The notes below the pieces were generated by a model, which was not told where the DNA came from, made no database searches, and saw nothing but the letters and a program-made list of their open reading frames with translations. Positions 3,983 through 10,728 of a stretch of 64,000 nt of DNA are shown piece by piece (positions within the stretch are counted from its first letter, which is position 1; each line of letters starts with the position of its first letter). Location of the stretch: positions 248,001 through 312,000 of IMG/VR virus record IMGVR_UViG_3300046665_000548; one strand, 5' to 3'. Both the position numbers and the translations under genes were made by a program.

Positions 3983-4035
3983 TTTTTACGGTTTCTTCCT
4001 GCAAATGTTTGGTCTGGCTATACTATTACTTGTAG

Positions 4036-4108
4036 CTCGGGAAGTAGGACTCGAACCCACATTTTCTGGAGTCAACATCCAGCATCCTACCAATTAGACG
4101 ATTCCCGA
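4036..4108 (-). tRNA. tRNA-Gln(TTG), atypical (G33, no CCA)
   Basis: TCGGGAA/TTCCCGA acceptor, anticodon arm CTGGA-TGTTGAC-TCCAG, GGTTCGAGTCC; 3' GCTA. Confidence 0.8.
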
Positions 4109-4115
4109 ATAAGAC

Positions 4116-4190
4116 TGGCTGGGGCGGGAGGGATCGAACCTCCGAATGCGGGAATCAAAATCCCGTGCCTTACCGCTTGGCGACGCCCCA
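4116..4190 (-). tRNA. tRNA-Gln(TTG), CCA encoded
   Basis: TGGGGCG acceptor, CGGGA-TTTTGAT-TCCCG, 3' GCCA. Confidence 0.95.
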
Positions 4191-4202
4191 ATAGTCTTAA
4201 AG

Positions 4203-4287
<85 letters not shown>

Positions 4288-4291
4288 GCGG

Positions 4292-4434
4292 TGTCTAAGG
4301 GAGGAATCGAACCTCCGTTGTAGTTGATGCTGTGAGGCTCCTTCGGTTTCTTTCCGGACTTCCGCCGACGATCACGCCACAACTATCAATCTACGCCGGT
4401 TCGCCCGGTGCGTATGCCACTCCGCCACATAGAC
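4292..4434 (-). ncRNA. tRNA-Leu-like RNA with stunted anticodon arm and ~75-nt variable arm
   Basis: GTCTATG/CTTAGAC acceptor, Leu-type D arm GGCGGAGTGGCATACGC, T arm GGAGGTTCGATTCCTCC, inserted stem-loop at 4320-4394. Confidence 0.7.
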
Positions 4435-4436
4435 AA

Positions 4437-4524
4437 TGGTGTGGATACTCGGATTCGAACCGAGACGAGGTTTACCTCGGTAGGTTCTGAGCCTACTGCG
4501 TCTACCAGATTCCGCCATATCCAC
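4437..4524 (-). tRNA. tRNA-Leu(CAG), CCA encoded
   Basis: GTAGG-CTCAGAA-CCTAC, long variable arm, ACCA. Confidence 0.95.
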
Positions 4525-4535
4525 AAACAATATTT

Positions 4536-4621
4536 TGGTGCGCCAAACAGGATTTGAACCTGTACGCTCTTTCGAGCACGGGCCTCTCATGCCCGCGTGT
4601 CTACCCTTCCACCGTCAGCGC
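4536..4621 (-). tRNA. tRNA-Leu(GAG), CCA encoded
   Basis: CGGGC-ATGAGAG-GCCCG, long variable arm, ACCA. Confidence 0.93.
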
Positions 4622-4634
4622 GAGATGTACTTTG

Positions 4635-4705
4635 ATGGAGGCCCTGGATTCGAACCAGAACTAACAGGGTCAGCACCTGTCCTTCTACCGTTAAAGTAGC
4701 CTCCA
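4635..4705 (-). tRNA. tRNA-Gln(CTG), atypical (G33, no CCA, extended acceptor stem)
   Basis: TGGAGGC/GCCTCCA acceptor, ACAGG-TGCTGAC-CCTGT, GGTTCGAATCC. Confidence 0.75.
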
Positions 4706-4731
4706 TCAAAGTACACCAAAGATGAGATTAG

Positions 4732-4804
4732 CTAGGGGAGTAGGGCTCGAACCTACGACCGCCTGAATCAGAATCAGGAGCGCTACCAACTGCGCCATCC
4801 CCCA
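4732..4804 (-). tRNA. tRNA-Gln(CTG), no CCA, extended acceptor stem
   Basis: TGGGGGA/TCCCCTA, CCTGA-TTCTGAT-TCAGG, GGTTCGAGCCC. Confidence 0.9.
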
Positions 4805-4816
4805 GCTAATCTCACC

Positions 4817-5101
4817 TCAAACTTTCACACCTCCTTTCCTCATCTTCTTCAACTCTGCTTTCGATAGTTCTTTTTCCACGATGTATCGCATCGGGTCGCC
4901 GTCTTCGTCGTCAACGACCGAGAATCCGGCCGCTTTGAAAGTCCTTGGGATGTTCACCGAACAGGTGCAGTAATCCCAAATTCTACTGTCGTTCTTCTCG
5001 TAACCGTCCCGAAAGACGACCCGATCTAGACCTCCCACGAGCTTCCCGATTTGTCGGGGCGTCGTGTAGATGTGTTGTCGAAAACCTACGCTGGTGCACA
5101 T
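4817..5101 (-). CDS. hypothetical protein, first gene after the Leu/Gln attenuator
   Basis: MCTSVGFRQH... with GGAGA SD; stop lies just before tRNA-Gln. Confidence 0.7.
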   Translation of the reverse strand: MCTSVGFRQHIYTTPRQIGKLVGGLDRVVFRDGYEKNDSRIWDYCTCSVNIPRTFKAAGFSVVDDEDGDPMRYIVEKELSKAELKKMRKGGVKV

Positions 5102-5117
5102 TGCATTTCTCCAAAAC

Positions 5118-5148
5118 AAAAGGCCCCCAGGATTTCTCCGGGAGCCTT
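5118..5148 (-). terminator. second intrinsic terminator of the Leu/Gln leader
   Basis: AAGGCTCCCGGA-GAAA-TCCTGGGGGCCTTTTG. Confidence 0.7.
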
Positions 5149-5161
5149 ACATGCGAACATG

Positions 5162-5191
5162 AAAAAGGCCCTGCCGGAGTTCCGGAGGGCC
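5162..5191 (-). terminator. attenuator terminator of the Leu/Gln tRNA operon
   Basis: GGCCCT-CCGG-AACT-CCGG-C-AGGGCC-TTTTT; 5' arm complementary to leader segment GAGGGCCAACC. Confidence 0.85.
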
Positions 5192-5219
5192 ACCTTTGGT
5201 TCAGTTGCTAGTCACAGCA

Positions 5220-5282
5220 TCACTGCACGCGGGGTTGGCCCTCGTTGGTAAGTTGCAGTTGCTGGAGTAGGTTCTTGAACAT
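5220..5282 (-). CDS. Leu/Gln-rich attenuator leader peptide MFKNLLQQLQLTNEGQPRVQ
   Basis: Codons 5-11 are CTA CTC CAG CAA CTG CAA CTT; ATG directly after the promoter; followed by antiterminator/terminator. Confidence 0.8.
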   Translation of the reverse strand: MFKNLLQQLQLTNEGQPRVQ

Positions 5283-5287
5283 GGTTT

Positions 5288-5318
5288 TATTTATCTCAGA
5301 CTTATGTTGCGCCGTCAA
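5288..5318 (-). promoter_or_regulatory. promoter of the Leu/Gln leader (TTGACG-N17-GATAAA overlapping TAAATA)
   Basis: Minus strand TTGACG GCGCAACATAAGTCTGA GATAAATA AAACC ATG. Confidence 0.7.
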
Positions 5319-5323
5319 TAAGA

Positions 5324-5355
5324 AAAAACGAGGAGAAGACTTGCTTCTCCTCGTC
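5324..5355 (-). terminator. intrinsic terminator of the candidate structured RNA
   Basis: CGAGGAGAAG-CAAGT-CTTCTCCTCG-TTTTTT. Confidence 0.85.
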
Positions 5356-5606
5356 GTGAGTTACTTTTACCAGCAATACAGCCAAGGCCACCGTGGCAGC
5401 CCACGTCCTCGGTTACGATCCGCCAGACTAGGGGTAACGATCCCCATTCCGGGTGGCGACGAGAAATCCATCCTGTCGCTGTATTGTTGGTAAAAGTAAT
5501 AGAAAGCGGGAGGGCTGCGTTGCGATACATCTGACACGGGCACACTGCCGACTAGCCAAATGCACGACTGCCCAGGTGTTCCCTCCCGCCAGTAGTCTTC
5601 AAAATA
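5330..5606 (-). ncRNA. candidate structured ncRNA of about 280 nt, unknown class
   Basis: Own TAAATA (5613-5618) and terminator; GCGGGAGGG/CCCTCCCGC domain; 22-bp near-perfect stem TTACTTTTACCAACAATACAGC/GCTGTATTGCTGGTAAAAGTAA closing a multibranch loop. Confidence 0.65.
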
Positions 5607-5628
5607 CCAGATTATTTACTGGCGTCAA

Positions 5629-10214: not shown

Positions 10215-10231
10215 ACGGATATTTATTGCAG

Positions 10232-10318
10232 CGGACAAGGTGGGATTCGAACCCACGGCACCCTTACGGGTGCGGCACGCTTCCAACGTGCTGGATTAAG
10301 CCTCTCTCCCACCTGTCC
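10232..10318 (-). tRNA. tRNA-Ser(GGA), no CCA
   Basis: GCACG-TTGGAAG-CGTGC, long variable arm, discriminator G. Confidence 0.92.
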
Positions 10319-10323
10319 AAGGG

Positions 10324-10415
10324 TGGCGGATGGTGTAGGATTTGAACCCACGGGACCCTTTCGGGTCCGCTCCGCTTCGAACGGAGTGCATTAAGCCAGA
10401 CTCTGCCAACCATCC
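10324..10415 (-). tRNA. tRNA-Ser(CGA), CCA encoded
   Basis: CTCCG-TTCGAAG-CGGAG, long variable arm, GCCA. Confidence 0.95.
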
Positions 10416-10426
10416 TAACTGAATTC

Positions 10427-10532
10427 TTTACGGTGTGGGATTCGAACCCACGGGCGGCGGAGTATAGGTCCATCAGCACCACTCCCCGCTCTATCTTCTG
10501 GAGTCAACCTTAATCCACTCGGTCAACCGTAA
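10427..10532 (-). ncRNA. tRNA-Ser-like RNA with degenerate anticodon arm and enlarged variable arm
   Basis: TTACGGT/ACCGTAA acceptor, D arm GACCGAGTGGATTAAGGT, T arm GTGGGTTCGAATCCCAC, 36-nt arm at 10454-10489. Confidence 0.7.
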
Positions 10533-10538
10533 CGAAAC

Positions 10539-10628
10539 TGGTGGAAACGGTGGGATTCGAACCCACGGAGCCCTTTCGGGCTCGGGACTTTAGCAAAGTC
10601 CTGGGATAAGCCTCTCCCCCACATTTCC
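10539..10628 (-). tRNA. tRNA-Ser(GCT), CCA encoded
   Basis: GGACT-TTGCTAA-AGTCC, long variable arm, ACCA (discriminator A rather than the usual G). Confidence 0.93.
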
Positions 10629-10639
10629 AATGTGCTTTG

Positions 10640-10728
10640 CGGAAGCGGTGGGATTCGAACCCACGGGACCCTTCCGGGTCCTTCGGTTTTCAAGACCGAC
10701 GCGTTCAGCCGGGCTCCGCCACACTTCC
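10640..10728 (-). tRNA. tRNA-Ser(TGA), no CCA, extended acceptor stem
   Basis: TCGGT-CTTGAAA-ACCGA, long variable arm. Confidence 0.93.

Follow-up and report, generated by a model that had tools for sequence, protein, structure and literature searches.

Ribosome-mediated (leader-peptide) transcription attenuation has classically been described for amino-acid biosynthesis, transport or aminoacyl-tRNA synthetase genes. In the textbook 1:2 / 2:3 / 3:4 model of the trp operon attenuator (trpL), anti-antiterminator, antiterminator and a single terminator are mutually exclusive; the terminator is thermodynamically favoured, but the antiterminator wins kinetically when the ribosome stalls, and termination also occurs without translation. 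In the his operon attenuator (hisL) of E. coli/Salmonella, a leader peptide with a run of regulatory codons is combined with a chain of more than four segments that takes two alternating registers (A:B, C:D, E:F against B:C, D:E), so that a stall is passed along by a domino of re-pairings; only the last hairpin is a terminator. The pheST attenuator (pheM leader) and T-box riboswitches give feedback control of a component of the decoding apparatus according to the supply of one charged tRNA, the T-boxes by binding uncharged tRNA directly, without a ribosome. In constitutive tandem terminators such as rrnB T1-T2, two intrinsic terminators in series multiply termination efficiency at the unregulated ends of operons.

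A locus that appears to combine elements of these systems is located on the minus strand of a window of 64,000 nucleotides, bases 248001-312000 of the 607,744-bp virus record IMGVR_UViG_3300046665_000548. This 608-kb phage appears to switch on a cluster of seven glutamine and leucine tRNA genes only when ribosomes stall on matching codons in a tiny upstream peptide, and two transcription stop signals in a row seem wired in such a way that opening the first also opens the second. An earlier note, made from the sequence alone, had pointed to two U-tailed hairpins in tandem, in which the 3' arm of the first could pair over 7 bp, with one G-U pair, with the 5' arm of the second around a CATG-TTCG-CATG hairpin. 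What was seen there is real, and the pairing is longer than had been stated. The note had also inferred that capture of the first 5' arm by an antiterminator frees the 3' arm to disrupt the second terminator, and that one stalling event would then open two terminators, lowering basal leak; this reading is supported by most of the in silico tests that could be run, in the absence of RNA or experimental evidence. The elements, in window coordinates, are the following:

5327-5355, minus strand: upstream intrinsic terminator, found in a consensus scan, that insulates the leader promoter from transcription coming from upstream.
5289-5318, minus strand: sigma70-like promoter with TTGACG (5318-5313), a 17-nt spacer and GATAAAT (5295-5289); the ATG follows 6 nt later, so the mRNA is probably leaderless (inferred).
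5220-5282, minus strand: leader ORF MFKNLLQQLQLTNEGQPRVQ, with its ATG at 5282, the regulatory codons CUA CUC CAG CAA CUG CAA CUU at 5270-5250 and the stop at 5222-5220.
5206-5271, minus strand: predicted anti-antiterminator (pause-like) hairpin, in which the regulatory codons (about 5271-5250) pair with the stop-codon region (about 5227-5206) and enclose segment 2 in the loop.
5233-5243, minus strand: predicted antiterminator 5' strand (segment 2), GAGGGCCAACC, which pairs with GGUGGCCCUC at 5194-5185.
5162-5194, minus strand: terminator 1 (T1), hairpin 5191-5167 and U5 tract 5166-5162, with a 5' arm shared with the antiterminator.
5150-5161, minus strand: CAUG-UUCG-CAUG mini-hairpin that caps the relay helix.
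5113-5148, minus strand: terminator 2 (T2), hairpin 5148-5120 and U-rich tail to 5113.
5136-5179, minus strand: predicted relay hairpin, in which the T1 3' strand (5179-5165) pairs with the T2 5' strand (5148-5136) over 13 bp with a CA bulge, excluding both T1 and T2.
4817-5101, minus strand: 94-aa ORF of unknown function, first gene of the regulated unit, with a GGAG ribosome-binding site directly following the T2 tail.
4035-4804, minus strand: regulated tRNA cluster with Gln(CUG) x2, Leu(GAG), Leu(CAG), a tRNA-like element, Leu(UAG) and Gln(UUG) x2.

On the minus strand, T1 reads GGCCCUCCGG-AACU-CCGG(C)AGGGCC followed by UUUUU, with a predicted energy of -20.1 kcal/mol, and T2 reads AAGGCUCCCGG-AGAAAU-CCUGGGGGCCUU followed by UUGUUUU, at -19.8 kcal/mol. 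The two strong hairpins are 45 nt apart and flank the mini-hairpin. A consensus scan detected T2 and missed T1 only because T1 has one bulge, while a second scan made for this analysis found both. The GGGCCUU:AAGGCUC pairing with one G-U continues across a CA bulge into CUCCGG:CCGGAG, giving 13 bp rather than 7, and, capped by the mini-hairpin, this relay hairpin scores -22.3 kcal/mol. The mini-hairpin contributes about 4 kcal/mol, and without it the relay (-18.4 kcal/mol) would be weaker than T2. The 191-nt leader folds with z = -2.99 against shuffles. Searches against Rfam gave only sub-threshold, chance-level hits (BjrC68 at 20 bits against a cutoff of 39). Two plus-strand ORFs that overlap the element (4945-5211 and 5051-5251) were taken to be spurious, as the region is explained by the minus-strand element.

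A strict scan found 59 strong terminators in the 608-kb genome, and exactly two same-strand pairs lie within 90 nt of each other, both in tRNA-operon leaders: the pair described here and one in the leader of the Phe/Leu/Trp/Arg/Lys/Val tRNA cluster (hereafter the Phe leader). The latter has the same layout of T1, mini-hairpin (CUGC-UUU-GCAG) and T2, similar energetics and a relay of about -20 kcal/mol. Complementarity between the T1 3' arm and the T2 5' arm ranks in the top 3.3 % (this leader) and top 4.2 % (the Phe leader) of 3422 terminator pairs, although some cross-complementarity follows automatically from the resemblance of the T1 and T2 stems. This resemblance is the basis of the main rival explanation, in which T2 is simply a second, unregulated backup terminator, possibly arisen by copying of a terminator cassette, and read-through of T2 would be a fixed fraction independent of the state of T1. 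The T1 and T2 stems belong to one GCCCUCC-like family and are rich in GGCC/CCGG palindromes, so that cross-pairing comes for free. A constitutive strong T2, on the other hand, would throttle the operon even when induced, the relay is slightly more stable than T2 only because of the conserved mini-hairpin, and the three-part layout recurs in the only other tandem pair in the genome. The T2 modules of the two leaders are the most similar pair among the four hairpins (44/48 aligned positions identical), and yet own-leader relay duplexes (-21.0 and -20.4 kcal/mol) are 3.5-4.5 kcal/mol better than cross-leader ones (-16.6 and -17.1 kcal/mol). This fits selection for relay matching, but also gene conversion between T1 and T2. 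The backup reading is considered unlikely, but it is the strongest of the alternatives.

The leader is a 20-codon ORF in which codons 5-11 are seven consecutive Leu/Gln codons; 9 of the 20 codons are cognate to the downstream tRNAs, and all five tRNA species of the cluster are covered. The first tRNA starts 12 nt after the stop of the 94-aa ORF. This ORF, which in the present view is co-regulated with the Gln/Leu tRNAs, has no Pfam family and no informative hit in the protein atlas. The tRNA-like element, at 4288-4436 on the minus strand between tRNA-Leu(CAG) and tRNA-Leu(UAG), has an acceptor stem and a T arm, but a 4-bp 'anticodon' stem capped by a GCGAA pentaloop and a roughly 75-nt insertion. 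It is not called by ARAGORN or Rfam. Upstream of the insulating terminator lies a noncoding unit (5360-5628, minus strand) with its own promoter-like site (TTGACG-16-TATTTT at 5628-5601), a conserved GCGGGAGGG...CCCUCCCGC stem (5590-5513) and a long hairpin (about 5500-5360), ending at terminator 5355-5327; it has no Rfam match and may be an sRNA.

The genome carries 57 tRNA genes, and eight clusters are preceded by short ORFs enriched in the cognate residues. Besides the Gln/Leu leader, these contain VTTTVVIITTV for Ile/Thr/Val, HQHSHH for His, SQSSSSSSAS for Ser, NRNNSNN for Asn, DEREED for Asp/Glu, LYPMPCYP for Tyr/Pro/Leu/Met/Cys, and LFNKRFWRRVR for Phe/Leu/Trp/Arg/Lys/Val. In all eight, every tRNA species of the cluster has at least one cognate codon in its leader. 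Each leader ends in a U-tailed hairpin, and only the Gln/Leu and Phe leaders have two terminators. The Ser leader is located within the window (about 11677-11500, minus strand) and has the same promoter motif, the peptide MTHFFSQSSSSSSASGVPGSVMR (stop TAG) and a single terminator, followed by three small ORFs and four tRNA-Ser genes (10231-10728, minus strand) whose four anticodons are all matched by leader codons. The other six are located at genome coordinates of about 136640, 149067, 238153, 343160, 523723 and 231887 (Phe/Leu/Trp/Arg/Lys/Val, Ile/Thr/Val, His, Asn, Asp/Glu, and Tyr/Pro/Leu/Met/Cys). The motif TTGAC-N16-19-[TG]ATAAAT-N3-9-ATG has only six hits in 608 kb, and all six are tRNA-cluster leader peptides. 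With the ATG only 3-9 nt past the -10 motif, these mRNAs are probably leaderless or nearly so, which is an inference, while the Tyr/Pro/Leu/Met/Cys leader has a normal 5' UTR with a ribosome-binding site. The His and Ser leader peptides (genome about 238060 and window about 11575) both end in VMR encoded by GUGAUGCGAUA(A/G), a nucleotide motif that probably reflects a shared RNA structure rather than a peptide function. Outside the window, at genome positions 4091-4256, two adjacent tRNAs have the anticodon CUA and would act as amber suppressors; no alternative code was used here, and whether the phage recodes TAG was not examined.

That T1 and T2 would just end a small peptide or sRNA gene, with the ORF and the tRNAs having their own promoter, was considered as well. 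Transcript data are lacking, no RNA sequencing run searched holding the locus, and promoter classes of the phage other than the sigma70-like one are unknown. The matching of leader codons to tRNA species in all eight leaders argues against this reading, as do the mutually exclusive antiterminator located 4-7 codons before the stop in this leader and in the Phe leader (and, by eye, the same arrangement in the Ile/Thr/Val leader), the ribosome-binding site of the ORF abutting the T2 tail and the conserved order of elements in a relative. No promoter-like site was predicted between T2 and the tRNAs. This possibility is regarded as very unlikely.

Folding of the leader without a ribosome gave, as the lowest-energy structure, pairing of the regulatory codons with the stop-codon region, which encloses segment 2, and both T1 and T2 form. 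With the 5' part masked, segment 2 pairs with 5194-5185, at -27.3 kcal/mol including inner stems. These are predicted folds only, without available covariation. The energies indicate kinetic control: before the T2 5' arm exists, the T1 state beats the antiterminator state by 3-5 kcal/mol; once that arm is out, antiterminator plus relay wins by 8-10 kcal/mol; and after the T2 3' arm is out, T1 plus T2 wins again by 3-4 kcal/mol. The relay thus flips the antiterminator/T1 balance by about 12 kcal/mol, but, as T1 plus T2 is the more stable at full length, the bypass is purely kinetic and depends on polymerase speed and refolding rates for which no calibration was available. The host and the polymerase are unknown. 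With the antiterminator held, the relay is the lowest-energy fold until the T2 3' arm is out, after which antiterminator plus relay (-50.2 kcal/mol) and antiterminator plus T2 (-48.3 kcal/mol) differ by 1.9 kcal/mol in favour of the relay, with a direct-path barrier of about 10.8 kcal/mol. In the Phe leader, the difference is 1.4 kcal/mol the other way, with a barrier of 9.9 kcal/mol.

Co-transcriptional folding, which the earlier note had put forward as a way to probe its idea, was simulated with a coarse model built for this analysis, a master equation over local minima with direct-path barriers, a k0 of 2e5 or 2e4 per second, 50 nt/s and a moving ribosome. Without a ribosome, 100 % T1 was obtained, and an unstalled ribosome gave 100 % T1 hairpin at the T1 decision point. 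A stall at codon 11, the last Leu codon, gave about 100 % antiterminator, 100 % relay and 0 % T2, so that in the model the state of T2 follows that of T1, whereas constitutive termination at T2 had been named in advance as an outcome that would speak against the relay. Stalls at codons 7 or 9 gave mostly T1, and the few survivors lost the antiterminator and then formed T2, which suggests that T2 also filters out transient antitermination. The model is sensitive to its parameters: static ribosome masks were abandoned because a ribosome parked on the stop codon left GAGGGC free and wrongly permitted the antiterminator, a point that the moving ribosome did not settle, and the off-state logic therefore rests on assumed synchrony of ribosome and polymerase. 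Upon replacing T2 with four other terminators of the same genome, the replacement formed in three cases (0.41-1.0) and the antiterminator collapsed, while one unrelated terminator was bypassed. Breaking the mini-hairpin raised T2 formation to 7-68 % and weakened the bypass. An arm-flipped T2 was also bypassed; this control was uninformative, as the GGCC/CCGG palindromes preserve cross-pairing, and both bypasses show that complementarity is easy to get. Whether read-through rises when the cognate charged tRNA is limiting was not measured; on this point only the model is available.

The same simulations bear on a third alternative, in which the functional unit would be the long quasi-palindromic hairpin of 5191-5120 (-42 kcal/mol), with the T1 5' arm paired to the T2 3' arm and the T1 3' arm to the T2 5' arm. 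It could serve as a processing or stability element, such as an RNase III site separating the leader from the tRNA precursor in read-through transcripts, or act at the DNA level as an inverted repeat. This fold is the thermodynamic optimum of the isolated 5196-5115 segment and of the Phe leader, and a G-to-A change at 5127 seen in variants turns, as read here, a G-U pair of this helix into A-U. Co-transcriptionally, however, T1 or the antiterminator forms first, and the long hairpin was a minor species in the model (about 3 %). Both halves carry proper U tails on the minus strand only, and the antiterminator and the leader codons are not explained. This alternative is considered improbable, and it is compatible with the relay model as a later fate of read-through RNA rather than a true alternative.

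Protein searches revealed only one related lineage, from which the relative L016 was compared; DNA of the second hit was not part of the comparison. L016, with an ORF 78 % identical and in the same position, keeps the promoter hexamers, the same seven regulatory codons, T1, the mini-hairpin stem (loop UCU instead of UUCG) and T2. From the -35 hexamer to the T2 tail the two sequences align almost without change, whereas the flanks are diverged and full of insertions and deletions. The stem at 5590-5513 and the tRNA-like element (L016 4562-4730) are also present in L016. Relatives carry a 116-nt structured-looking insert between the T2 tail and the ORF start (L016 3878-3998, corresponding to window 5100-5118) that this phage lacks. 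Contigs from three metagenome runs carry C-to-U at 5141 and G-to-A at 5127 on the RNA strand, a compensatory C-G to U-A change in T2 that leaves the relay pair as G-U and preserves the margin of relay over T2 (-20.6 against -17.7 kcal/mol). This one double change is compatible with all the competing helices, and no substitution tests the relay pairs independently of the T1 and T2 stems (the relay-only positions being T1 loop C5179/U5178 against T2 loop A5137/G5136, and the mini-hairpin stem). In variants, promoter changes fall only in the spacer and at -35 base 6, which moves towards consensus, and in another run the leader stop is changed from TGA to TAA.

Further searches for relatives gave little. 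Degenerate leader patterns had no hits in viral and metagenome contigs, and neither the 94-aa protein nor the upstream-neighbour proteins had relatives in viral contigs. Phages related through DNA polymerase B (45-49 % identity, five contigs of 56-165 kb) lack the promoter/leader motif. Relatives of the radical-SAM gene next to the Phe leader sit on contigs without tRNAs; one of these, a phage-like Logan contig with no tRNA genes in the 13.7 kb retrieved, encodes RNA ligase, Thg1-like and YqeY-like proteins, which look like tRNA repair functions.

The explanation favoured here, with a probability of about 0.6, is that 5118-5194 is the output stage of a leader-peptide attenuator controlling the 94-aa ORF and the seven tRNA genes. 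Host RNA polymerase would start at the sigma70-like promoter, and the transcript probably begins at or next to the AUG of the leader. If the aminoacyl-tRNAs are plentiful, or if nothing is translated, segment 2 would be covered by the moving ribosome or enclosed in the anti-antiterminator, T1 would form, and any polymerase leaking through T1 would meet a freely forming T2. If a ribosome stalls on the Leu/Gln codons, segment 2 would capture the T1 5' arm, and the freed T1 3' arm would pair with the T2 5' arm as soon as it is made, the mini-hairpin nucleating and capping this pairing. The relay would both stop the T1 3' arm from displacing the antiterminator and withhold the T2 5' arm, so that T2 cannot fold while polymerase crosses its U tract. 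One stall would therefore open both gates, while the off-state leak would be roughly the product of two terminator leaks. Of this scheme, the pairings, their energies, their conservation and the second instance in the genome rest on computation, whereas the leaderless start, ribosome timing, co-transcription of the tRNAs, and actual termination and read-through have been inferred.

A bolder reading, judged slightly more likely than not, is that a huge phage runs at least eight of its tRNA operons as decoding-capacity homeostats, with tRNA genes transcribed only when the matching aminoacyl-tRNAs run short, for example through codon-usage mismatch or host tRNA-cleaving defences. In the two largest operons, a relay-coupled pair of true terminators would give very low leak while still opening fully on a single stall. 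This would be the first case of tRNA genes under ribosome-mediated attenuation, and a new two-gate attenuator design; no paper describing leader-peptide attenuation of tRNA operons or relay-coupled tandem terminators was found. Phage-encoded tRNAs are usually treated as constitutive supplements, whereas here their transcription would be feedback-controlled, isoacceptor by isoacceptor, by the very decoding step they serve. This gives a direct and testable handle on why large phages carry tRNAs, whether for codon supply, to escape host tRNA-targeting defences, or both. The relay-coupled double terminator is a compact way to combine low basal leak with full inducibility and could be reused in synthetic attenuators. 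It also shows how duplicating a terminator inside a leader creates a coupled second gate almost for free.

In conclusion, the double terminator belongs to a well-supported attenuator, and the relay is the best explanation of the layout of T1, mini-hairpin and T2. The locus has the short ORF with a run of cognate codons, the intrinsic terminators ahead of the structural genes and the predicted mutually exclusive antiterminator and anti-antiterminator of a leader-peptide attenuator, but the genes behind it fall outside the classical scope of that family. The his attenuator is the closest system. Two alternating registers are found here too, one with anti-antiterminator, T1 and T2 and the other with antiterminator and relay, but the middle hairpin (T1) is itself a full terminator with a U5 tract directly after its stem, so that two real gates would be coupled in series. 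The regulated genes are tRNAs instead of biosynthetic enzymes, and the leader appears leaderless and would sense two amino acids through six different codons. Compared with trp, there are two terminators instead of one, and segment 2 lies 4-7 codons before the stop codon instead of after it. Compared with pheM and the T-boxes, which control aminoacyl-tRNA synthetase or amino-acid genes, the targets are tRNA genes. Compared with tandem terminators of the rrnB T1-T2 type, the pair sits in a 5' leader, has an alternative structure that competes with the second terminator (the relay at -22.3 against T2 at -19.8 kcal/mol) and, in the relay model, can be opened together.
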